A stretch of 64,000 nucleotides of DNA, from IMG/VR virus record IMGVR_UViG_3300005529_000001, positions 62,001 to 126,000 of that record; one strand, given 5' to 3'. The position numbers and the translations under genes are program-made. Under the pieces are notes generated by a model. That model had not been told where the DNA came from. It did not search any database and worked only from the letters and a program-made list of their open reading frames with translations. Of this stretch, positions 48,284 through 60,273 are shown one piece after another; the stretch's first letter is position 1; each line of letters starts with the position of its first letter.

Positions 48284-51200
48284 ATGATCAAGTGCCAGAT
48301 GTGCCGCGGCTCTGGGTGGTACCAGTCGTCGCCAGGCAACAGGAGCCAGTGTCCGTATTGCAACGGACGTGGTAGCATCAACGAGAACTCGCCCAGCGAG
48401 CAACGTAGAGCTCGTGACTTCGAGTCTTTCTATGGCGATGACCTCAATCGAGCTGGTTATAGCACGAAAGAGATCAGCCGCATCTTGGAGGAGAAGTCGG
48501 GCCAGATCGTACAAGCGCTGAAGACGATGCCTGTGAAGGGCCCTATCGCTTCGTCTCAGGTCGGTCGCCCGCCCCAACTTCGTCCCACACGAGTGCCATA
48601 TAAGCTTGACTCTGACGAGAAAGAGCGGCTCAGGCAACTTCGTGATCCTTCGCAACAGACTTTGCCTCCGACGCAGGCAACATCAACTGATGTAAAGCGC
48701 CAACAAACAGAAGTAGTTTCCAGTCACACAACGGCGAAAGCCACAGAAAAGAGAGCAGACATCATGGGAGAAGACGACATTCGCGGCCGACGGGCGCAGG
48801 ACATGATCCTAGCCCCGAACGAGTACGCATACATCAGCGACGAGACCAAGGGCGAAGTCAACGTCTTCGTCGGCCCCAACAAGCAGTCGCTTGCGGGCAC
48901 TGACCAGATGGTCAAGTTCGACACCAAGACGAAGCGGTTCTCGCCGACGTCACGTGAACAGGGCAACCAGCTGTTCCAGACGGCTCCCGAGGGCTGGTAC
49001 GTCGTCCTGAAGAACCCGGCCGAGGGCGACAAGCACCCGGCTGGCAGCGGCAAGCTATCGACCCCCACCCTTCGGGTCGGTAAGAAGGTTAACATCTCCG
49101 GTCCCTGTTCCTTTGCTCTCTGGCCCGGTCAGATGGCCAAGGTCGTCCAGGGCCACTCGCTGAAGTCGAACGAGTACCTGCTGTGCCGGGTCTACGATGA
49201 AGAGGCTGCACGGGCCAACTGGTCCAAAGCAGTCATCAAGACGCAGGGCGAGGCAACGACGGGTGAGGGCGCAGATGCAACTCCGAAGAACCAGCGTCCC
49301 GCCAAGGTGGTGAAGGCTGGCAGCGAGATCCCGTCCGAGGGCGAGCTCACGATGGGCAAGCTCTTCGTGGTCCGTGGCACTGAGGTCTCCTTCTACATCC
49401 CGCCGACGGGCATCGAGGTCGTCGCTGATGGTGAGAAGTATGTCCGCGAGGCCGTCTCTCTGGAACGCCTCGAGTACTGCTTGCTCCTCGACCAGAACGG
49501 CAACAAGCGATACGTCATCGGTCCCGACGTCGTGTTCCCGCGACCGACCGAGAAGTTCGTCGAGGCGCCGATCAAGTCCAACCCGGACAAGGTCAAGGCC
49601 AAGAAGTTCCGTGCCCAGGAGCTGACTCCAACGAGCGGCATCCACATCCGCGTCATCTCGGATTACACCGAGAAAGACGGCACCAAGCGCACCGCGGGTG
49701 AAGAGCTCTTCATCACGGGCAACGAGCAGCCGGTGTACTTCCCCCGTGAGGAGCACGCCATCATCAAGTACGGCGAGCAGGATGTCCACTACGGAATCGC
49801 GATCCCGCCGGGCGAGGCTCGCTACGTGCTGAACAGGCTCACCGGCGAGGCGAGCCTGGTCGACGGTCCGAAGATCTTCCTTCCCGATCCCCGGACGCAA
49901 GTCATCCTCCAGCGCGCCATCCCGCTCGACATGTGCGCTCTCCTTTACCCCGGCAACGAGGAGGCTCTCGCGATCAACGCGGCTCGCCTCGGCGTCGAGG
50001 ACCAGGACTACATGGGTGCTGGTGGAGCAAACGCCGCGTTCCTCAACAGCACTTACGAGCGTAACGCTGGCGAGAACGAGGCCTATGCTGCGGTCGCTGC
50101 AGCGGCTCCGAATGACACCGCTCGCGGTCGCATCCTGATCAAGTCGGCGAGCAAGTCCCTTCCGGGCGACGCCTTCGATCGGAAGGCGAAGTTCACTGCG
50201 CCGCGCTCCGTCATCCTCAACACCAAGTACGACGGCGCCATCGGCATCAACCTCTGGACCGGCTACGCCATGCTGCTCGTCAGCAAGGGCGGCAAGCGCC
50301 GGGTAATCCAGGGACCGGGCACCTTCATGTTCGAGTACGACGAGAACCCGCAGCTCATCTCGCTGTCAACGGGCAAGCCGAAGTCGACCGACAAGCTCTG
50401 CAAGACGTACTACTTGCAGGTCACCAACAACATGGTCAGCGACATCGTCGAGGTCGAGACCAGGGACTTCTGCCGGCTCACTGTCAAGCTGAGCTACCGA
50501 GTCAACTTCGAAGGCAACTCCGAGAAGTGGTTCGCGGTTGACAACTACGTCAAGTTCCTCTGTGACGCGATGCGGTCACGCATCCGCTCCGCGGTGCAGA
50601 AGCTGGGCATCGAGGAGTTCTACGGCAACCACACGCCAATCCTGCGTGACATCATCCTGGGTGCCAAGCCCGCCGAGGGTGGCGAGCGCACAGGCACCAT
50701 GTTTGCCGAGAACGGCATGCGAATCTACGATGCTGAGGTCCTTGGCATCCAGATGCAAAACCAGGACGTCGAGAAGCTCCTGGTCGCTGCACAGCGGTCC
50801 GTCATCCAGAACACCCTCGTCCTTGCTGAAGAGCGGCGCAAGCTGGACTTCGTCAAGGAGACCGAGGAGCTCAAGCGGGAGACAGCTTCCGCTCAGGCCG
50901 AGACGACCCGGGCAACCCTCGAGTTGCAGCGAGTCAACGCCCAGCGCAAGCTGGAGCTTGACCTGGCCCTGATCGCCAACAGCGCCAAGCAGCAGAGCGA
51001 GCAGCTTGCTGTCGAAGCAGCAACGACGGCAGCCCGAGCCACTCTCAACCTGGCCAACGAGAAGGCCGCGGCGGAAGTTGCGGCAGTCGAGCTGGAGACC
51101 GCTGAAGCCCGTCAGGCTTCGGAACGAACGCACCAGGCCGCCCTACAGGCCCTCGAGCTCGCCAAGCTCACGGCCCAGACAGAAGCGACCAAGGAGAAGG

Positions 51201-51436
51201 CAACCGCCATCAGCCCGCAGCTAGTCGCGGCGCTAGAAGCGGCGGGCAACAAGGAAGTGGCGATGAAGCTCGCTGAGTCCTTCAACGTGCTGGGCATCAT
51301 CGGCGGCGGCAAGAAGAGCGTCGCCGAGATCTTCAGTGAGCTGCTCAAGGGCACCGTGCTGGGCCCCCAGCTCGCCGCGGTGGTCAAGGGTGAGAAGAGC
51401 GAGTCGAACGGTTCGAGCAAGACGGCTCGAGCCTGA
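48284..51436 (+). CDS. major vault protein (MVP) homolog with N-terminal Zn-finger extension
   Basis: MVP-type repeats (LAPNEYAYISD..GEV..FVGP; RYVIGP; GIHIRVISDY..KDGTKRTAGEELFITG; YVLNRLTGE..LVDGP); shoulder domain LSTGKPK...SDIVEVETRDF..L.VKLSY..NF...F.V.NYV..LC.A..SRIR.AV...F.ENG; long Ala/Glu-rich cap helix; second possible start at 48764. Confidence 0.85.
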   Translation: MIKCQMCRGSGWYQSSPGNRSQCPYCNGRGSINENSPSEQRRARDFESFYGDDLNRAGYSTKEISRILEEKSGQIVQALKTMPVKGPIASSQVGRPPQLRPTRVPYKLDSDEKERLRQLRDPSQQTLPPTQATSTDVKRQQTEVVSSHTTAKATEKRADIMGEDDIRGRRAQDMILAPNEYAYISDETKGEVNVFVGPNKQSLAGTDQMVKFDTKTKRFSPTSREQGNQLFQTAPEGWYVVLKNPAEGDKHPAGSGKLSTPTLRVGKKVNISGPCSFALWPGQMAKVVQGHSLKSNEYLLCRVYDEEAARANWSKAVIKTQGEATTGEGADATPKNQRPAKVVKAGSEIPSEGELTMGKLFVVRGTEVSFYIPPTGIEVVADGEKYVREAVSLERLEYCLLLDQNGNKRYVIGPDVVFPRPTEKFVEAPIKSNPDKVKAKKFRAQELTPTSGIHIRVISDYTEKDGTKRTAGEELFITGNEQPVYFPREEHAIIKYGEQDVHYGIAIPPGEARYVLNRLTGEASLVDGPKIFLPDPRTQVILQRAIPLDMCALLYPGNEEALAINAARLGVEDQDYMGAGGANAAFLNSTYERNAGENEAYAAVAAAAPNDTARGRILIKSASKSLPGDAFDRKAKFTAPRSVILNTKYDGAIGINLWTGYAMLLVSKGGKRRVIQGPGTFMFEYDENPQLISLSTGKPKSTDKLCKTYYLQVTNNMVSDIVEVETRDFCRLTVKLSYRVNFEGNSEKWFAVDNYVKFLCDAMRSRIRSAVQKLGIEEFYGNHTPILRDIILGAKPAEGGERTGTMFAENGMRIYDAEVLGIQMQNQDVEKLLVAAQRSVIQNTLVLAEERRKLDFVKETEELKRETASAQAETTRATLELQRVNAQRKLELDLALIANSAKQQSEQLAVEAATTAARATLNLANEKAAAEVAAVELETAEARQASERTHQAALQALELAKLTAQTEATKEKATAISPQLVAALEAAGNKEVAMKLAESFNVLGIIGGGKKSVAEIFSELLKGTVLGPQLAAVVKGEKSESNGSSKTARA

Positions 51437-51518: not shown

Positions 51519-53435
51519 ATGGATGTTTTCAGCTCACACCTCGGCCTCATCATTGGGGGCGTGGTCTTCCTGTTCGCGGTGTTGCTCCATCGCATGGTGC
51601 TACGCCTTTTCGGGATGGTCGTCATCCCCGAAGACGGCATCGGCATCGTCACAAAGAAGTTCGTGCTCTTCGGAACCAACAAGGTCCTGCCTGACGGAGC
51701 CGTCGTCGCTCTCCAGGGCGAAGCTGGCGTCCAGGCTGACACCCTCGCGCCGGGCGTTCACTTCGGTCTCTGGCCTTGGCAGTTCGACATCGCAGTCCAG
51801 AAGTTCGTCACCATCGCCCGAGGCAACCTGGGTGTTGTCGTCGCTCGGGACGGCAAGGCGATCAGCGGAGGTCGCATCTTGGGCCGCACCGTCGAGTGCG
51901 ACTCCTTCCAGAACGCCAGGCAGTTCCTGCAGTCAGGCGGCGAGCGCGGACCCCAGCTAGCGATCATCCCGCCCGGGACCTACCGCATCAACACCGGGCT
52001 CTTCACCATCCAGATGACTGACGTCACCGAGGTCCATGACAACATGGTCGGCGTCGTCACCACCAAGGAGGGCCAGGCTCTCGACACGGGTGCCATCGCG
52101 GGACCCGAGGTCCCCGATCACAACATGTACCAGGACCCGCAGAAGTTCCTGAACGGCGGTGGCCGCAAGGGTCTCCAGGAGCAGGTGATCCTGGCGGGAC
52201 GTTACTACATCAACCCGCTCTTCGCCACTGTCGAAGAGGTCGCGATGACAGAGGTCCCCATCGCCCAGGCAGGCGTCGTCATCGCCTTCGTCGGCAAGGA
52301 AGGCGTCGATGTCACAGGTGACTCGTTCAAGCACGGCAACCTGGTCAGCAAGGGCCAGCGTGGTGTCTGGGCCGACCCGCTCGATCCCGGTCGCTACCCG
52401 ATCAACCCCTACACCCACCGGGTCGAGAACGTGCCGACAGCAAACATCGTCCTGAACTGGGCGACGGGCAAGTCGGAAGCTCACAACCTCGACAAGAACC
52501 TCAGCACCATCACGGTGCGGTCCAACGACGGGTTCACGTTCAACCTGGATGTCTCGCAGATCATCCACATTCCCAGGGCCAGCGCCTCGAAGGTCATCGC
52601 CCGGTTCGGCAACGTCGCCAACCTGGTCACCCAGGTCCTGGAACCGACGATCGGCAACTACTTCCGCAACGCGGCACAGGGTTCCGACGTCATCAAGTTC
52701 CTCGGTGCCCGCCAGGAACGCCAGAACGATGCCAAGAAGTCGATCGGTGACGCGCTCAATGACTACGACGTTGTCGCGGTTGACACCCTGATCGGAGACA
52801 TCACTCCGCCGAAGGAGCTGATGAAGACCCTGACTGACCGCAAGATCGCTCAGGAAGAACAGGCAACGTTCCAGACCCAGCGCCAGGCGGAAGAGCAGCG
52901 CAAGGACCTCGAGCAGGCCCGAGCGACCGCAGCCACCCAGGCCAAGGTCGTCGATGCCGAGCGGAAGGTCGCCATCGCTGAGTTCGAGGCCCAACAGGCG
53001 GTGAAGAAGGCCGAAGGTGACTCTCGGTCGATGGTCATCAATGCCAGGGCCAGCGCCGAGATGGACGTCGTCAAGGCCGAGGCGGCAGCGAAGGTCAAGA
53101 CGGCGATCGCCGAAGCGGAAGCCAAGGCAACCGTCCTCAACGGTGATGCCCAAGGCAAGTCGATCGCCGCGGTTGGTACCGCAGAAGCCGCGGTCATCAA
53201 GGCCAAGGCGGACGCGGTCGACCAGACCAACTACGCTACGATCGAGGTCGCTCGGGCTCTCGCCAATGGCAAGCACCCGCTCGTTCCCCAGATCGTCGCA
53301 GGCGGCGGTGGCGAGGGCGGGGGCATGAACAACCTGACCAGCGTCCTGATGGCCAACCTCATCGACAGGGAGAGCCACCAGCCAAAGGTGAACGGCACTG
53401 CAACTCGCAAGCCCTCCGAGAAGTCGTCAGACTGA
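51519..53435 (+). CDS. SPFH/flotillin-family membrane protein
   Basis: N-terminal TM; repeated GVV...G.Q...L.PG.Y.IN units; SPFH core (ITVRSNDGF.F.LDVSQI...VLEP.IGNYFRN); AEA-rich coiled coil; LVP.I..GG tail. Confidence 0.9.
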   Translation: MDVFSSHLGLIIGGVVFLFAVLLHRMVLRLFGMVVIPEDGIGIVTKKFVLFGTNKVLPDGAVVALQGEAGVQADTLAPGVHFGLWPWQFDIAVQKFVTIARGNLGVVVARDGKAISGGRILGRTVECDSFQNARQFLQSGGERGPQLAIIPPGTYRINTGLFTIQMTDVTEVHDNMVGVVTTKEGQALDTGAIAGPEVPDHNMYQDPQKFLNGGGRKGLQEQVILAGRYYINPLFATVEEVAMTEVPIAQAGVVIAFVGKEGVDVTGDSFKHGNLVSKGQRGVWADPLDPGRYPINPYTHRVENVPTANIVLNWATGKSEAHNLDKNLSTITVRSNDGFTFNLDVSQIIHIPRASASKVIARFGNVANLVTQVLEPTIGNYFRNAAQGSDVIKFLGARQERQNDAKKSIGDALNDYDVVAVDTLIGDITPPKELMKTLTDRKIAQEEQATFQTQRQAEEQRKDLEQARATAATQAKVVDAERKVAIAEFEAQQAVKKAEGDSRSMVINARASAEMDVVKAEAAAKVKTAIAEAEAKATVLNGDAQGKSIAAVGTAEAAVIKAKADAVDQTNYATIEVARALANGKHPLVPQIVAGGGGEGGGMNNLTSVLMANLIDRESHQPKVNGTATRKPSEKSSD

Positions 53436-55010: not shown

Positions 55011-55759
55011 AAGGTGATCGAAAACTACGCGTGGTGGCGAAGTATATTGAGAGGGTGACGCCTAAATTTCTCGTCTACACCATGTATTGTGGTGAGTTTG
55101 ACTTCAATCACTGCGTGAGAGCCATTGCCTCACAACGTGACGTGGAGGTCAAGCACGAGGTCGTCAGCTACCTTCCAGAAATGGAAGCACACAACGTCGT
55201 CTACCAGGCGTTCAACGCCGCGGGACCCGAGTGGTACCGTGCTAAGATCGACGCTGACGTAGAGCTGCTTGATGATCGCGTCCTGCAACGGGCGGCTCAA
55301 CGGTTCAGGGAGTTGCCCCTCGCCCACGGGATCAGCCCGTTGGTTCACGATTATCTCTCTGATAGCGAGATCCATGCAGGCGTGAATTTCTACACTCACC
55401 ATGTTGGGTTTGATGTCCAAAAAGACAACTTGCGATGCGATCGTGGCATGGTCTTTAGGGAGTCTGAGCACTGGCTTGGCGGTGACATGCCCGTTGTTGG
55501 CAAGCACATGCATCATTGCAACGAGCTGGCAGCATTCAGGTACGGGTTCCATCGTGGTATGAAGGGGCAGATCTCGATCCGCGACAAGGTTAAGGTTGCT
55601 TCAGAGAAACACGTAGCTGACACACGTAATCACCTTCGTGCTTTAGCATTGAAGGGATTTGATGTGGGACTTTCAGCAAATCGCAACATCGGTCACAACT
55701 ACGGTGACAGTGACCTCATGGACGCATTCAAACGAGCAACCGCACAAGGATCTCAATGA
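55007..55759 (+). CDS. glycosyltransferase-like protein (GT-A)
   Basis: C...IASQ, AKIDADV (DxD); start uncertain. Confidence 0.5.
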   Translation: MKGDRKLRVVAKYIERVTPKFLVYTMYCGEFDFNHCVRAIASQRDVEVKHEVVSYLPEMEAHNVVYQAFNAAGPEWYRAKIDADVELLDDRVLQRAAQRFRELPLAHGISPLVHDYLSDSEIHAGVNFYTHHVGFDVQKDNLRCDRGMVFRESEHWLGGDMPVVGKHMHHCNELAAFRYGFHRGMKGQISIRDKVKVASEKHVADTRNHLRALALKGFDVGLSANRNIGHNYGDSDLMDAFKRATAQGSQ

Positions 55760-56622
55760 GATACGTTGACATTATCAAGATGCGTGCCGCTTGCAAGTCA
55801 GCCGCTGAGACGTTGCAATACGTGGGTGGGTTGGTCAGGCCAGGCATCACCACTGCGGAGATCGACAGGCTTGTTCACAATGATACCGTCAGACGTGGTG
55901 GCAAGCCCGCGCCCTTGAACTACAGGGGATTCCCCAAATCATGCTGCACGTCGATAAACGACGTCGTCTGCCACGGCATCCCAGACAAGACGGTGCTAAA
56001 AGAAGGTGACATCGTCAACATTGACGTGACGACGATCCTCGATGGACACTTCGGTGACACCAACGCCACGTTCTACGTGGGACAGGTGAAGCCCGAAGTC
56101 GAGCGGTTCGTGTCACGTGCAGCGATGGCGATGTGGGCAGGCATCCACGTCGTCCGCCCGGGCATCAAACTAGGAATGGTGGGCCAAGCGATCGAGGCTT
56201 ATGCCAAGAGTGAAGGGTACAGTGTGGTCAGGGATTTCGGCGGTCACGGCATTGGCCGGATCTTCCACGCCAAGCCACATGTCCATCACTTTGCCAATGA
56301 TGAGGGTCCGGTCCTCAAGGTCGGCGACACCTTCACCATCGAACCCATGATCAACATGGGTGGGCCCGACGTGGTCATCGACAAAGCTGACAGCTGGACA
56401 GCGCGGACTGCTGATGGCTCGCTCAGTGCGCAGTTCGAAAACACCGTCCTTGTAACAGATGATGGTGTTGAAGTGTTGACAATGGCAGAGAGCCCAGACG
56501 TCCAGTGTCACGTTTGTGGCACTTGGAGCTGGCTCGAGGGCAGCGATCCCGTCAAGTGGGGCTGGACAGAGAAAGAGGGTAGGTGGACGTGCAAGCAGTG
56601 CAGAACCAATGAGTCACCTTGA
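55756..56622 (+). CDS. map: methionine aminopeptidase type I with C-terminal Zn-ribbon tail
   Basis: FPKSCCTSINDVVCHGIP, DIVNIDVT, GDT, GHGIG..FH, TIEPMI, SAQFE; tail CHVC...CKQC. Confidence 0.92.
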   Translation: MRYVDIIKMRAACKSAAETLQYVGGLVRPGITTAEIDRLVHNDTVRRGGKPAPLNYRGFPKSCCTSINDVVCHGIPDKTVLKEGDIVNIDVTTILDGHFGDTNATFYVGQVKPEVERFVSRAAMAMWAGIHVVRPGIKLGMVGQAIEAYAKSEGYSVVRDFGGHGIGRIFHAKPHVHHFANDEGPVLKVGDTFTIEPMINMGGPDVVIDKADSWTARTADGSLSAQFENTVLVTDDGVEVLTMAESPDVQCHVCGTWSWLEGSDPVKWGWTEKEGRWTCKQCRTNESP

Positions 56623-56848
56623 TGACTACCCGCTCATTGAGCTTGATCGGGTCGAGGGCGGTCCCATTGACGACGCTAAGCCCGGTGATTTCGTGAGGTA
56701 CAGCAACGAACCTGCTACCACGTTTGGGATGCTGATCGCCCGGGTTGACAGGGGATCGTTTCACGGTGACGTGGTGATGGTGCTGTGGTCACAAGCACCC
56801 GTCGCCCGCCTCAGCTCCAGCCGCGTCAACAGGTGGGAGGATCTGTGA
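56609..56848 (+). CDS. SH3-like 'VLWS' family protein
   Basis: KPGDFV...FGMLIA...VLWS..P. Confidence 0.7.
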   Translation: MSHLDDYPLIELDRVEGGPIDDAKPGDFVRYSNEPATTFGMLIARVDRGSFHGDVVMVLWSQAPVARLSSSRVNRWEDL

Positions 56849-57303
56849 GCCAGCTCGAGCGAGTGACGACTCGAGACGTGTGGTGCCCGTCTGAGGAGTA
56901 CCCGTCGCCCGGCGTCTTTGTCAAGCACATCGCGGACGACAAGTCCTTGGGCATGATCGTTGGTCGCGAGGGAACTGACCTTCTAGTCCTGTGGTCAAAG
57001 CAACCGTTTCACATCAAGATTGAGACACGAGACATCAAGCCAACGTCGCGGAAGCTTCGCATCAAGTTCAGTGTTGTTCCTGACGTCATGTCGCCAGAGT
57101 TCCAACAACTAGCGCAGCACGAGGTGCATGAGGATTTCGCCCCGGGTGAGCTGACGCCGAGCGGGATCAACTGGTACCAACGTCACGGTGGACGGGTAAC
57201 ACTTCACCAGGACGGACACGCTGAGGTTGACCGAACCGTGAGTGACCTCGGAGAGTACGATCTTAAAAGAGCTCAAGTGGAATATGAAACTCGACGTCGT
57301 TGA
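56845..57303 (+). CDS. SH3-like 'VLWS' protein fused to a gp23-like capsid fragment (middle region)
   Basis: SPGVFV...LGMIVG...VLWS..P then IKIETRDIKPTSRKLRIKFS. Confidence 0.65.
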   Translation: MSQLERVTTRDVWCPSEEYPSPGVFVKHIADDKSLGMIVGREGTDLLVLWSKQPFHIKIETRDIKPTSRKLRIKFSVVPDVMSPEFQQLAQHEVHEDFAPGELTPSGINWYQRHGGRVTLHQDGHAEVDRTVSDLGEYDLKRAQVEYETRRR

Positions 57304-57658
57304 CAAGAAAGAAGTCGAACACGAGCTCAAGCCTGGTCAGCTGTGGCAATGGGTTTTTGATGTCGAAATGCCAAACGTTCCCAAAGGTTGGTGGATGGCG
57401 CAGAGGGTGACTGAAGAGGGTCGGCGCTTAGGCATCGCCGCAAACCACCCATTCATCATGAGTTATGGGATGACATTCGTCATCATTCACCCTGATGATA
57501 CGGGCCCTTACCAATACAACCTCACTCACGTTGATGAGAACGGGCTCGTACAGTCTGACCCACCCCTACGTTATCACGTCGTCCTCATCGGAGACACACT
57601 TGTCTGGTTCCAACATGATTGGTTAAAATCATGCACATTGCTGACTGACGTGGAGTAG
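57284..57658 (+). CDS. PG-family barrel protein (divergent)
   Basis: LKPGQLW...VVLIG..LVW. Confidence 0.55.
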   Translation: MKLDVVDKKEVEHELKPGQLWQWVFDVEMPNVPKGWWMAQRVTEEGRRLGIAANHPFIMSYGMTFVIIHPDDTGPYQYNLTHVDENGLVQSDPPLRYHVVLIGDTLVWFQHDWLKSCTLLTDVE

Positions 57659-57678
57659 GATAACGATGCCATGCGTTA

Positions 57679-57978
57679 GTGATGCTTACAACAATTCGCA
57701 ACGACATGCAATCACGGCGGCAGGTCCAACGACGCTTTCCGCCGGGCTCGTTCATCATCAATCACCCCGGCGATCGGATCGCGCTCGTCGTGGGTTGGGG
57801 ACCGACGGAGTCCACACTTCGGCAGTCGATCACCGAACCCAGCCGGATGTTAGGACGGCCTCGTTCATGGGTCGCTTACATCATCGAGGACAACAGGATC
57901 AAGACCGTCATGTGGGAGGTCGTCCGGGATGGATACACGATGGAAGAGTGGGAGGCTCTCCGTGAAGCTGGTCCGTGA
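57679..57978 (+). CDS. PG-family barrel protein (divergent)
   Basis: PPGSFI...ALVVG. Confidence 0.55.
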   Translation: MMLTTIRNDMQSRRQVQRRFPPGSFIINHPGDRIALVVGWGPTESTLRQSITEPSRMLGRPRSWVAYIIEDNRIKTVMWEVVRDGYTMEEWEALREAGP

Positions 57979-58318
57979 AAAAGACGTCAACAGGGGTCAC
58001 CTGGTCAGGACTATCTGTGCGGGTGATCCCAACACTCCCCTGTTGCCGGGCGACATGGTCAGGCACTGGCAAGACTCCCAGAGCTCGGGCACCGTCATCT
58101 CAGTCTCAGACGATGGACGGGTGAATGGCGACCTTGAAGCGATGGTGCTCTGGACGAAGCTGCCCTTCAACGGACAATACCCTCCCTCGCCAGTGATGCC
58201 CACGGACACCAACCCGTGTGCAGAAGTCACGTTGATGACCGACATGTTCACAGCTGGCATCATCAGCAAGAAGACGATGTACGAACACCTCGGACTGGAT
58301 CCAGATGAGCAACCTTAA
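57962..58318 (+). CDS. SH3-like 'VLW' protein with an RNR-like TNPCAE motif in its tail
   Basis: LPGDMV...GTVIS...VLWT..P then TNPCAEVTL. Confidence 0.6.
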   Translation: MKLVREKDVNRGHLVRTICAGDPNTPLLPGDMVRHWQDSQSSGTVISVSDDGRVNGDLEAMVLWTKLPFNGQYPPSPVMPTDTNPCAEVTLMTDMFTAGIISKKTMYEHLGLDPDEQP

Positions 58319-58712
58319 AACGTATGAAGGCCAGCTAGCGCGTGATATCGTGAGCATTGACGCTCGATCCTTTCAAGTCAGCGAACACACATTAGCAATC
58401 TGTCTTTCTCCGGGCGATTGGGTCAAGCACCGCTTTTACGAACGAGCTCCGGGTTTAGGCATGTTGGTTGCTGTCGGCAAGAAACGTGATTCCTTGATGA
58501 AAGAGATCGATTTTATCACGGTCCTGTGGTCAGTTGAACCCACAAACCCGTTCAATGCGTTGTCACCCAGCCTCGTGTACGCTCCATACATCCCGCTTGT
58601 AATAACGCCAACAGTGATTGAAACCGAGTCACCCGTCGCCGCTTATCAATACCATCGTAAGTTGGTAAACAAGTCATATTTTAGCAGCATCAAAGTCAAG
58701 GACATCAAGTGA
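58305..58712 (+). CDS. SH3-like 'VLWS' protein fused to a gp23-like capsid C-terminal fragment
   Basis: SPGDWV...LGMLVA...VLWS..P then VYAPYIPL..TP...KLVNKSYFSSIKVKDI. Confidence 0.75.
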   Translation: MSNLKTYEGQLARDIVSIDARSFQVSEHTLAICLSPGDWVKHRFYERAPGLGMLVAVGKKRDSLMKEIDFITVLWSVEPTNPFNALSPSLVYAPYIPLVITPTVIETESPVAAYQYHRKLVNKSYFSSIKVKDIK

Positions 58713-59317
58713 GCGCTCTCAAAACATACGGTCGCTTGTTCAATGACGAGGATGGGAAATATTACCCCTGGGACTTCCGGCTCACCAACGGGTGTGGCAA
58801 TCCCAACTGTGATGTGTTAGCTCCTGGCGAGTGGGTAGAACACAGATCCTGGGGTGGCTTCGGGATGATCATCGCCATTGATGATCAGCAAATCACCATC
58901 CTGTGGAGCGAAGAGCCCCACACCCCAACATTCCCCAGCATTGCGGGCCTGACTCACCGCGTCAACATGCAACAGGTGGCTCAAGCTCTGATTGCAGTCC
59001 AGCCGATGTCACTGCCCGCAGGTGCCATCTTCTACATGGACTACACGTATGGAGGTTACAAGCTCGACCCCAGGTGCAACGAGGGTCCCCTGTGGCGTAG
59101 GATGTTCTGGCGAGCATGCCTGTACACGTCTACACGGATCCAGTCGTGGTGGTCGTCTTTCTCATCCTGGTCACGCTCCTTGTTGTCCAAGCCTACCATA
59201 CCAATCGAGCCCGATCAGTTCGAAAAGGAACTGAAGAACATCATCACAAGATGCGGGAGACGGACGACGGCCAGCAAGCCAAAGGCCCTGCCCACAAAGA
59301 CGCCTGAGGGAGGTTGA
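58709..59317 (+). CDS. SH3-like 'ILWS' protein fused to a gp23-like capsid fragment (Gol region)
   Basis: APGEWV...FGMIIA...ILWS..P then LIAVQPMSLPAGAIFYMDYTYG. Confidence 0.75.
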   Translation: MSALKTYGRLFNDEDGKYYPWDFRLTNGCGNPNCDVLAPGEWVEHRSWGGFGMIIAIDDQQITILWSEEPHTPTFPSIAGLTHRVNMQQVAQALIAVQPMSLPAGAIFYMDYTYGGYKLDPRCNEGPLWRRMFWRACLYTSTRIQSWWSSFSSWSRSLLSKPTIPIEPDQFEKELKNIITRCGRRTTASKPKALPTKTPEGG

Positions 59318-59320
59318 CCA

Positions 59321-59611
59321 GTGCCCCCGGTCCGCCCCCAAGAAAACCCGTACAAGCCCGGTGATTGGGTCACCATGGCACAGGGAAACGGTGCTGGTGA
59401 GGGAATCCTGTGGCGGGTCAACAAAGTTGATGGCAGCTGGATCAAGATCGAACCCGCGTGGGCGGTGACAGGGCGCAGCGTGCTCCGACCGAAGCGGGTG
59501 CAATACTTCCAAGTAGATGCAGCCGATATCGTCCAGCTTGGTTCCGCCTTCCAGCAACTCTCAAACATCATCCGCGACATTGCTATCTCGCGAGGCATGG
59601 ACCGTGAGTGA
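59321..59611 (+). CDS. barrel + helix protein, paralog of 59604-59930
   Basis: KPGDWV...I.PAW...DIV.LG..F...IRD.A..GMD. Confidence 0.65.
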   Translation: MPPVRPQENPYKPGDWVTMAQGNGAGEGILWRVNKVDGSWIKIEPAWAVTGRSVLRPKRVQYFQVDAADIVQLGSAFQQLSNIIRDIAISRGMDRE

Positions 59612-59930
59612 GGGTGACCTGGTTATGTGGCACGGCAAGCAGACTGAGCACACATCGCTCAAGAACAGGGTCGTTTACCAGGTGATGCAGGTCGAGGAGA
59701 GGGACAGCGACCTGATCGGGACGATGGTCACCTTCAAGCTCCGACCCGCGTTTGACATCGGCCAACCGATGGGCGTTGCTGTTCACACCATCTCATGGTC
59801 GAGCAGCGAGCTACGCAAGGTGACGCTGGTTGACCTCGGCGTCATCAGGCTCTCATTTGACAATTTCATCCGTGAGTATGCCCGAATGTTGGGCATGGAA
59901 ACGACGGACAATGAACTTCCCGGAACGTGA
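59604..59930 (+). CDS. barrel + helix protein, paralog of 59321-59611
   Basis: EGDLV...L.PAF...TLV.LG....FIRE.A..GME. Confidence 0.65.
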   Translation: MSEGDLVMWHGKQTEHTSLKNRVVYQVMQVEERDSDLIGTMVTFKLRPAFDIGQPMGVAVHTISWSSSELRKVTLVDLGVIRLSFDNFIREYARMLGMETTDNELPGT

Positions 59931-60273
59931 GCGACGTCATCACAGCGACATCTTTGCTGGGATGATGTTCTGTTTTGTCGAGGGTCCCGACAAGGAGAAG
60001 CCGACGTTCGTGACATTGGATGATGGTGGCGTTGACAGGACCAAGCCACAGATGGTCATCGGCAAAGAGTACGTCCAAAAATTCTCAGGTGGGTGGTGGA
60101 GGTACCTGTTGTTGGGACCCGGCCCTGACGGGCTGCCTCACCTGGCTTGGTTCGAGGGCAACCTCCATTGGATCAAGCGCATCGCTGACCCGGTGTGGGA
60201 AGAGCGAGAGCGTGATGAGCTTCAGAAGCAACGCAAAGCTATGTACGAACGCGGAGAAGTAGTGCGAGCCTGA
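59911..60273 (+). CDS. hypothetical protein (possible divergent barrel family member)
   Basis: MVIG...YLLLG...LAW. Confidence 0.55.
   Translation: MNFPERERRHHSDIFAGMMFCFVEGPDKEKPTFVTLDDGGVDRTKPQMVIGKEYVQKFSGGWWRYLLLGPGPDGLPHLAWFEGNLHWIKRIADPVWEERERDELQKQRKAMYERGEVVRA

Follow-up and report, generated by a model that had tools for sequence, protein, structure and literature searches.

A tandem array in a 369-kb phage genome encodes small predicted beta-barrel proteins carrying copies of conserved capsid-protein segments

The tandem array and its genomic setting

Five co-directional ORFs (A, B, E, F and G), located between 56.6 and 59.3 kb of the analyzed DNA, share an N-terminal domain of approx. 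70 residues, whose signature is PG.WV.H ... G.G..IA ... LWS..P (Table 1). This DNA (referred to below as the window) is a stretch of 64,000 nucleotides corresponding to bases 62001-126000 of the virus record IMGVR_UViG_3300005529_000001 (369,475 bp), which has direct terminal repeats and is rated complete. A search of the phage genome with a profile of the shared domain retrieved ORF G with an E value of 2.1e-22. The GTG start codon of ORF G overlaps the stop codon of ORF F (GTGA, 58709-58712), and the same arrangement is found between ORFs A and B (GTGA, 56845-56848); such overlaps suggest that translation within the array may be coupled. ORF G has seven orthologues (34-58% identity), and its start could be fixed because the N-terminus (MS.LKTY) is conserved.

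Table 1. Genes of the array region and parts of ORF G (window coordinates)
Feature	Position	Strand	Description
MVP-like gene	48284-51436	+	1050 aa; homologous to the major vault protein of eukaryotes (Pfam MVP_shoulder 6.8e-29, Vault_3 1.8e-7)
SPFH/Band_7 gene	51519-53435	+	638 aa; follows the MVP-like gene, upstream of the array
Methionine aminopeptidase (MetAP)	55756-56622	+	Peptidase_M24, 5.6e-48; Cys-rich C-terminal extension
ORF A	56609-56848	+	~79 aa; barrel with very short tail; barrel profile E 9e-14
ORF B	56845-57303	+	~152 aa from GTG 56845; barrel, copy of MCP 385-422, acidic/basic C-terminal module
ORFs C and D	57242-57978	+	Conserved array members without recognizable barrel signature; orthologues in L005, L009 and L010
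ORF E	57929-58318	+	At most 129 aa; barrel and tail; barrel profile match
ORF F	58305-58712	+	135 aa; barrel and copy of the MCP C-terminus (aa 86-134 = MCP 585-637)
ORF G	58709-59317	+	202 aa; N-terminal beta-barrel, copy of MCP N-segment, basic Trp/Ser-rich C-terminal region
ORF G, N-terminal domain	58709-58918	+	aa 1-70; predicted five-stranded beta-barrel, PG.WV.H ... G.G..IA ... LWS..P
ORF G, MCP-derived peptide	58931-59053	+	aa 75-115; corresponds to own MCP 81-122 and T4 gp23 92-132
ORF G, C-terminal region	59054-59314	+	aa 116-202; 16 K+R, 7 D+E, 5 Trp; helices predicted
ORFs H, I and J	59321-60273	+	Conserved downstream array members

The record originates from a soil metagenome, and near-identical pieces are present in mine metagenomes. 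Its GC content falls from approx. 0.62-0.67 (window positions 1-26 kb) to approx. 0.52-0.59 (30-64 kb), which suggests two compositional domains within one phage genome. The phage's major capsid protein (MCP), a 640-aa member of the Gp23 family, is encoded at approx. 267.7-269.7 kb of the record and has its closest relatives (34-50% identity) in uncultured huge phages and in Microcystis and Flavobacterium myophages. A gp20-type portal protein (Pfam Portal_T4, 1e-75) and a T4-type large terminase are also encoded, and the structural module is therefore of the T4 type. Near the MCP gene lies a GIY-YIG homing-endonuclease-like gene (L012:18775-19536, approx. 273.8 kb of the record); in T4, gene 23 is adjoined by segD. 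The array lies approx. 146 kb from the MCP gene, amid small non-structural genes. As clues to the timing of its expression we sought the T4-type late promoter TATAAATA, which does not occur anywhere in the phage genome, and sigma-70 promoters, for which the scan gave chance-level matches only.

The gene order B, C, D, E, F, G, H/I, J is conserved in seven independent loci (six metagenome contig sets and a 340-kb, 99%-complete virus record), whose array orthologues are 30-60% identical, and in all examined related loci for which upstream sequence was available the array is preceded by the MVP-like gene. The number of array copies and the type of tail following the shared domain are highly variable between relatives. 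MetAP gives no clue to the host, since its closest cellular relatives (48-58% identity) are spread across many phyla. ORFs H and I (59321-59930), together with relatives in two other contigs (L005 and L010), form a second sub-family of small proteins, with the C-terminal helix motif L..(E/K)Y..LG.FIRD.A...G; no source of this motif was found in the phage proteome.

The surroundings of the array differ in detail among the relatives. In a 345-kb forest-soil contig an AAA ATPase gene (PF00004; L015:8354-9631) is placed between the SPFH gene and the array, i.e. at the position of MetAP in the window. Two relatives carry after the array a gene for a metzincin-type zinc protease (HExxHxxGxxH; Peptidase_M10 / Reprolysin; L109:9141-9761 and L016:11710-12261), which the window phage lacks, and relatives have a small eIF-1a-like ORF (PF01176; L005:12553-12819 and L016:17198-17464) downstream of the array, at a distance of a few kb.

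The shared domain was modelled with AF2 from an alignment of 31 sequences as a five-stranded small beta-barrel (pLDDT 83.5, pTM 0.69). Comparison of this fold with the PDB and the AFDB clusters (Foldseek) yielded nothing significant (best E 0.3-0.6), the best Z score in a wide VIA search was 4.2 (unrelated models typically reach Z 7-8), and matches to Pfam were sporadic and below threshold. The Atlas lead for the domain was DUF4926, with a score of 0.88, the reliability threshold of the tool being 0.9. Two independent aligners placed SlyD/SlpA insert-in-flap, SH3, Tudor, PilZ and translation-factor domain II structures among the top weak neighbours, and phage neck and capsid accessory proteins were also present there; however, scores against SlyD/SlpA and the other small barrels are within the noise, and the similarity serves as a lead only. 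An NfeD-like SPFH partner, considered as a possible identity of the barrel, was missing from the fold-search hits.

The capsid-derived segment of ORF G and the Gol peptide of T4

Residues 76-115 of ORF G match positions 6-45 of the 376-position Pfam model Gp23 (PF07068) with an E value of 1.6e-6 and 28.2 bits, above the gathering cut-off of 24.4 bits, and the protein also matches PHROG 138 ("major head protein", E 2.6e-7). Alignment of aa 75-115 with residues 81-122 of the phage's own MCP gave a Smith-Waterman score of 108, compared with 33.9 +/- 5.3 for shuffled sequences (n=300; Gumbel p ~8e-9). BLASTP of the segment against this MCP revealed 57% identity over 35 aa, and a profile of the ORF G orthologues matched MCP residues 77-124 with an E value of 2.9e-20. 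At the level of sequence, these comparisons confirm aa 75-115 as a genuine copy of the conserved N-terminal segment of the MCP, and they bear out the captured capsid fragment that the earlier note on this DNA had placed here. The fragment is not isolated, ORF G being one of five putative barrel paralogues.

With 40 of the 376 Gp23 positions represented, the rest of ORF G being the barrel and the basic tail, and with copies of 20-55 residues only in the family as a whole, a role of ORF G as a capsid subunit can be ruled out. The A domain, P domain and spine helix of the HK97 fold are not covered by ORF G, and the genuine MCP is encoded elsewhere in the genome. The basic C-terminal region is kept in "long" G-type members and missing from "short" ones. 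We considered an amphipathic membrane helix in this region and rejected it, as the hydrophobic moment was not above that of shuffled sequences. The AF2 model of full-length ORF G (pLDDT 43) was unusable.

The Gol peptide of T4 targets domains II/III of EF-Tu in its GDP form. It comprises residues 94-122 of gp23 and is the activator of Lit-mediated EF-Tu cleavage (PMC3014915); according to a review, mutagenesis identified 13 residues of a 20-residue core as important for activity (PMC3014915), and EF-Tu is the only partner outside the capsid that is known for this MCP segment from experiment (PMC3014915). Using the gp23 sequence from NC_000866, together with HMMER searches against the gp23 chains in the PDB, we found that residue n of ORF G corresponds to gp23 residue n+17, and that aa 77-105 therefore align with gp23 94-122 in exact register. 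The T4 sequence on which the earlier note had based the correspondence with Gol proved to be exact.

The T4 29-mer is matched by ORF G at 9 of 29 residues and by the phage's own MCP at 10 of 29, and the pattern QPM..P.G..F.....YG is invariant in T4 gp23, the own MCP and four ORF G orthologues. Relative to the own MCP, ORF G retains 7 of 10 residues in the core and 5 of 19 in the upstream half, in agreement with the kept core and diverged upstream half that had been described earlier. From this pattern the earlier note had drawn the idea of a peptide that binds but does not activate. That step is not supported, since the divergence is peculiar to the ORF G copy: in 40 other Gol-equivalent tails the mean number of upstream identities to the window MCP is 8.6 of 19, 82% of them exceed ORF G, and the family-wide consensus of such tails (PLVRRV...L.A..LVSVQPM..P.G.IFY.D..YG) shows that most relatives keep the upstream half.

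The ORF G segment and the Gol peptide thus share an exact register and the QPM..P.G core because each goes back to the N-terminal stretch that is most strongly conserved in Gp23-type MCPs (PMC3014915). This resemblance is a by-product of homology and is not evidence for Lit or EF-Tu as a target. The two differ in context, in that Gol is part of a complete capsid protein, whereas the ORF G segment belongs to a separate small gene and is fused to a beta-barrel. No Lit-type peptidase (Peptidase_U49, PF10463) is encoded in the 369-kb phage genome, and the sister genes of ORF G carry unrelated virion segments.

A wider family with capsid- and portal-derived tails

The tail of ORF F copies the C-terminus of the own MCP (p ~8e-8; profile E 1.6e-10), and that of ORF B copies MCP residues 385-422, at the junction of I-linker 2 and the spine helix (E-loop-equivalent). 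In the case of ORF B the match within the window phage is weaker (p 0.009; profile E 1.4e-3), and the orthologue from a related contig matches Pfam Gp23 positions 136-175 with an E value of 2e-7. An extra array member present in one relative carries a portal-derived tail, identical at 13 of 17 positions to residues 290-306 of the window-phage portal. Outside the window, at approx. 317435-317668 of the record (L003:1435-1668, + strand), we found a stand-alone 77-aa ORF that is a copy of MCP residues 397-446 (Pfam Gp23 positions 148-196, E 4.7e-8) and lacks the barrel domain. Its neighbours are methyltransferase-like and glycosyltransferase-like genes.

When the barrel profile was searched against 1.84 billion cluster representatives (clusters at 50% identity), 466 protein clusters, that of ORF G included, were matched at E<=1e-3 and 69 at E<=1e-10. 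The domain almost always occupies residues 1 to approx. 70 of proteins of 63-243 aa. We compared 160 tails with the MCP and portal of the window phage, and approx. 117 could be assigned to one of five MCP or portal segments: 48 to the MCP N-terminal (Gol-equivalent) segment, 35 to the middle segment of the MCP, 26 to its C-terminus and approx. 8 to two portal motifs (portal 288-307 and 324-350, both of which occur in one protein); 41 of the 160 remained without assignment. Pfam Gp23 matches 51 of 150 family members and no other Pfam family recurs. The QPM motif follows the barrel at a fixed spacing of 19-30 residues, mostly 23-30. An alignment of 42 T4-type MCPs, taken from loci retrieved by a pattern inside the first conservation peak, has four such peaks, three of which hold the copied segments.

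As far as sequence comparison reaches, the architecture is shown to consist of a barrel of approx. 70 residues fused, essentially without a linker, to a copy of 20-55 residues of a conserved virion-protein segment. We found no homologues of the family among 50,697 GenBank phage records, no match to PADLOC models or to known anti-defence families, and, apart from the PHROG 138 match of ORF G, nothing informative for the array members in PHROGs; a literature search on capsid-fragment decoys or mimics retrieved nothing comparable. The barrel proteins, known from uncultured phage and metagenome sequences, thus apparently form an undescribed and widespread family.

The third-codon identity between the fragments and the MCP gene is only 0.33-0.45, which indicates that the copies are ancient and contradicts recent gene conversion from the MCP gene. 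The same value bears on the possibility that the tails are non-functional debris, i.e. pieces of the MCP gene scattered by recombination or by a homing endonuclease and read through by chance. The GIY-YIG homing endonuclease genes near the MCP gene and the stand-alone 77-aa fragment elsewhere in the genome would agree with such an origin. However, the same intact architecture recurs in the 466 clusters, gene order is kept across phages whose orthologues are so divergent, and the core motif has been retained even though synonymous sites are saturated. The conservation data thus effectively refute this explanation, to which we assign a negligible probability, and the retained motif shows a core that is held by selection while its flanks drift. 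The tracking of cognate pairs (each fragment against the MCP of its own phage) ranked the cognate 3rd and 9th of 50, and was uninformative because the MCP segments are almost invariant.

Possible partners of the displayed peptides

When mapped on the published T4 structure (PMC9546572), the ORF G segment runs from the last part of the N-terminal arm through the first strand of the P-domain into the beginning of I-domain linker 1 (the E-loop-equivalent linker), the segments of ORF B and the 77-aa ORF cover I-domain linker 2 and the spine helix, and that of ORF F covers the C-terminal strands. In the HK97 fold the segments of ORFs G, B and F presumably come together in the P-domain. A complex prediction for ORFs G, B, F and the 77-aa ORF, set up as the reassembly of a P-domain-like sheet, gave pLDDT <50 and ipSAE 0.00, and is no evidence either way. 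In T4, the N-terminal region of gp23 becomes ordered through contacts with neighbours after expansion (PMC9546572), and the I-domain linkers make contacts both within and between capsomers (PMC9546572).

The reading that we prefer, with a probability of about 0.4, is that the tails mimic virion segments and that their partners are folding or assembly intermediates of the capsid and portal. It is favoured because such intermediates are the only single class of partners that covers all five tail types. Each tail would display a peptide able to compete for, or attach to, the surface normally bound by the segment concerned; the partners would be MCP and portal intermediates of the phage itself or of a co-infecting relative, and the barrel could cap them in the manner of a chaperone, modulate assembly or anchor an accessory domain. 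Put more generally and with low confidence, the tails may engage whatever binds these segments; intermediates of capsid or portal assembly are the most likely candidates, and host factors, EF-Tu among them, are possible ones.

Several known proteins provide partial parallels. T4 gp24, PICI Ccm, P4 Sid and SaPI CpmB are encoded by phages or satellites, and their effect on the capsid lattice relies on likeness to the MCP or affinity for it; they are, however, whole HK97-fold proteins or dedicated scaffolds, whereas the members of the present family copy 20-55 residues. Lambda gpD, the Dec arm of P74-26 and PapD-type donor-strand complementation resemble it in combining a compact beta domain with a strand that completes or caps the sheet of a partner; they have no sequence or significant fold relationship with the barrel, and, unlike them, the family carries strands that copy the sequence of the putative partner itself.

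Several considerations weigh against the assembly-intermediate reading: (i) the tails evolve much faster than the MCP segment, (ii) the array is located in a non-structural region, far from the MCP gene, (iii) inhibition by a phage of its own assembly requires an extra assumption on timing or target, and (iv) EF-Tu is the one non-capsid partner known for the segment whose copies form the commonest type of tail. In the case of (i), the MCP segment is 98% identical between the window phage and the 340-kb relative, whereas the G-type tails of the two phages match it at only 38-43% identity; such fast divergence is more in keeping with a short linear motif than with a strand that has to slot into a fold.

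Decoration proteins such as lambda gpD and P74-26 Dec (through its arms) anchor by beta-strand augmentation. By analogy, the family could comprise minor virion or decoration proteins whose barrel sits on the surface of the capsid or portal and is anchored by strand pairing with the E-loop-equivalent linkers of the MCP. Points in favour are the compact, confidently modelled barrel, the presence of phage neck and capsid accessory proteins among its weak fold matches, and the correspondence of the tails to strands that pair mutually or with neighbours in the HK97 fold (PMC9546572). These fold matches are insignificant, however (best Z 4.2, E at least 0.3), the genes are distant from the structural module, and the strands copied by the tails are occupied already in the folded MCP. 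We consider a virion location quite improbable.

The variable copy number and tail type, and the position of the array amid accessory-type small genes, would also suit a general immune decoy or sensor blocker, which shows the least mutable MCP and portal motifs early and thereby jams sensors of the host, or triggers based on chaperones, that recognize such motifs in nascent virion proteins. Both proteins contribute to the tails their most conserved segments, i.e. those on which a host sensor could rely, and Gol/Lit is a precedent for the sensing of a linear peptide. It speaks against such a role that Avs-type sensors recognize the folded HK97 shape, through large interfaces, and not short peptides (PMC13581612), and a peptide of 20-55 residues cannot imitate this shape. 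Moreover, a peptide identical to the trigger should activate a sensor rather than block it, and none of the PADLOC models or known anti-defence families was matched. A decoy function of this kind therefore seems unlikely.

A more specific alternative is that the tail of ORF G is a Gol-like binder of EF-Tu that does not license a Lit-type protease, and that it either protects the phage from a Lit-like abortive system or modulates EF-Tu during the synthesis of capsid protein. The exact register with the T4 29-mer and the frequency of the Gol-equivalent tail, the most numerous class (48/160), speak for it, as does the finding that no fewer than two defence systems, Lit and Avs7, read assemblies of MCP and EF-Tu (PMC13581612). 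Against it, T4 Gol is matched at so few residues, the phage lacks a Lit homologue, and the diverged upstream half is a peculiarity of one copy. Stoichiometric masking is implausible, since EF-Tu makes up 6-10% of cell protein (PMC13581612). The proposal also leaves the MCP C-terminal, MCP middle and portal tails of the sister proteins unexplained. We know of no link between these other motifs and EF-Tu or Lit. Although improbable, the EF-Tu reading is kept as a live minority hypothesis, because EF-Tu is the only known non-capsid partner and its assemblies with the MCP are read by Lit and Avs7.

The finding is larger and stranger than the single Gol-like fragment from which it started. If the tails do act by mimicry, the family would represent a natural library of interaction peptides derived from capsid and portal proteins, and would point to the viral or host surfaces that bind T4-type virion proteins at their most constrained parts. 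It would also make testable the old question of why the Gol region is so strongly conserved, and that of the generality of the contact between MCP and EF-Tu.

Tentatively, and with some doubt, the array proteins may be seen as a widespread and so far undescribed class of huge-phage proteins in which a common beta-barrel presents "self" peptides copied from those regions of the capsid and portal proteins that are least mutable, either as assembly chaperones or inhibitors of the donor-strand type or as the first natural decoys against linear-motif surveillance; in that case the target of the Gol-equivalent members would be the MCP/EF-Tu axis that Lit and Avs7 use. This may amount to a new principle of capsid assembly control or counter-defence in huge phages, and the phage module of vault-protein and SPFH genes, so far unexplained, would become tied to virion proteins.
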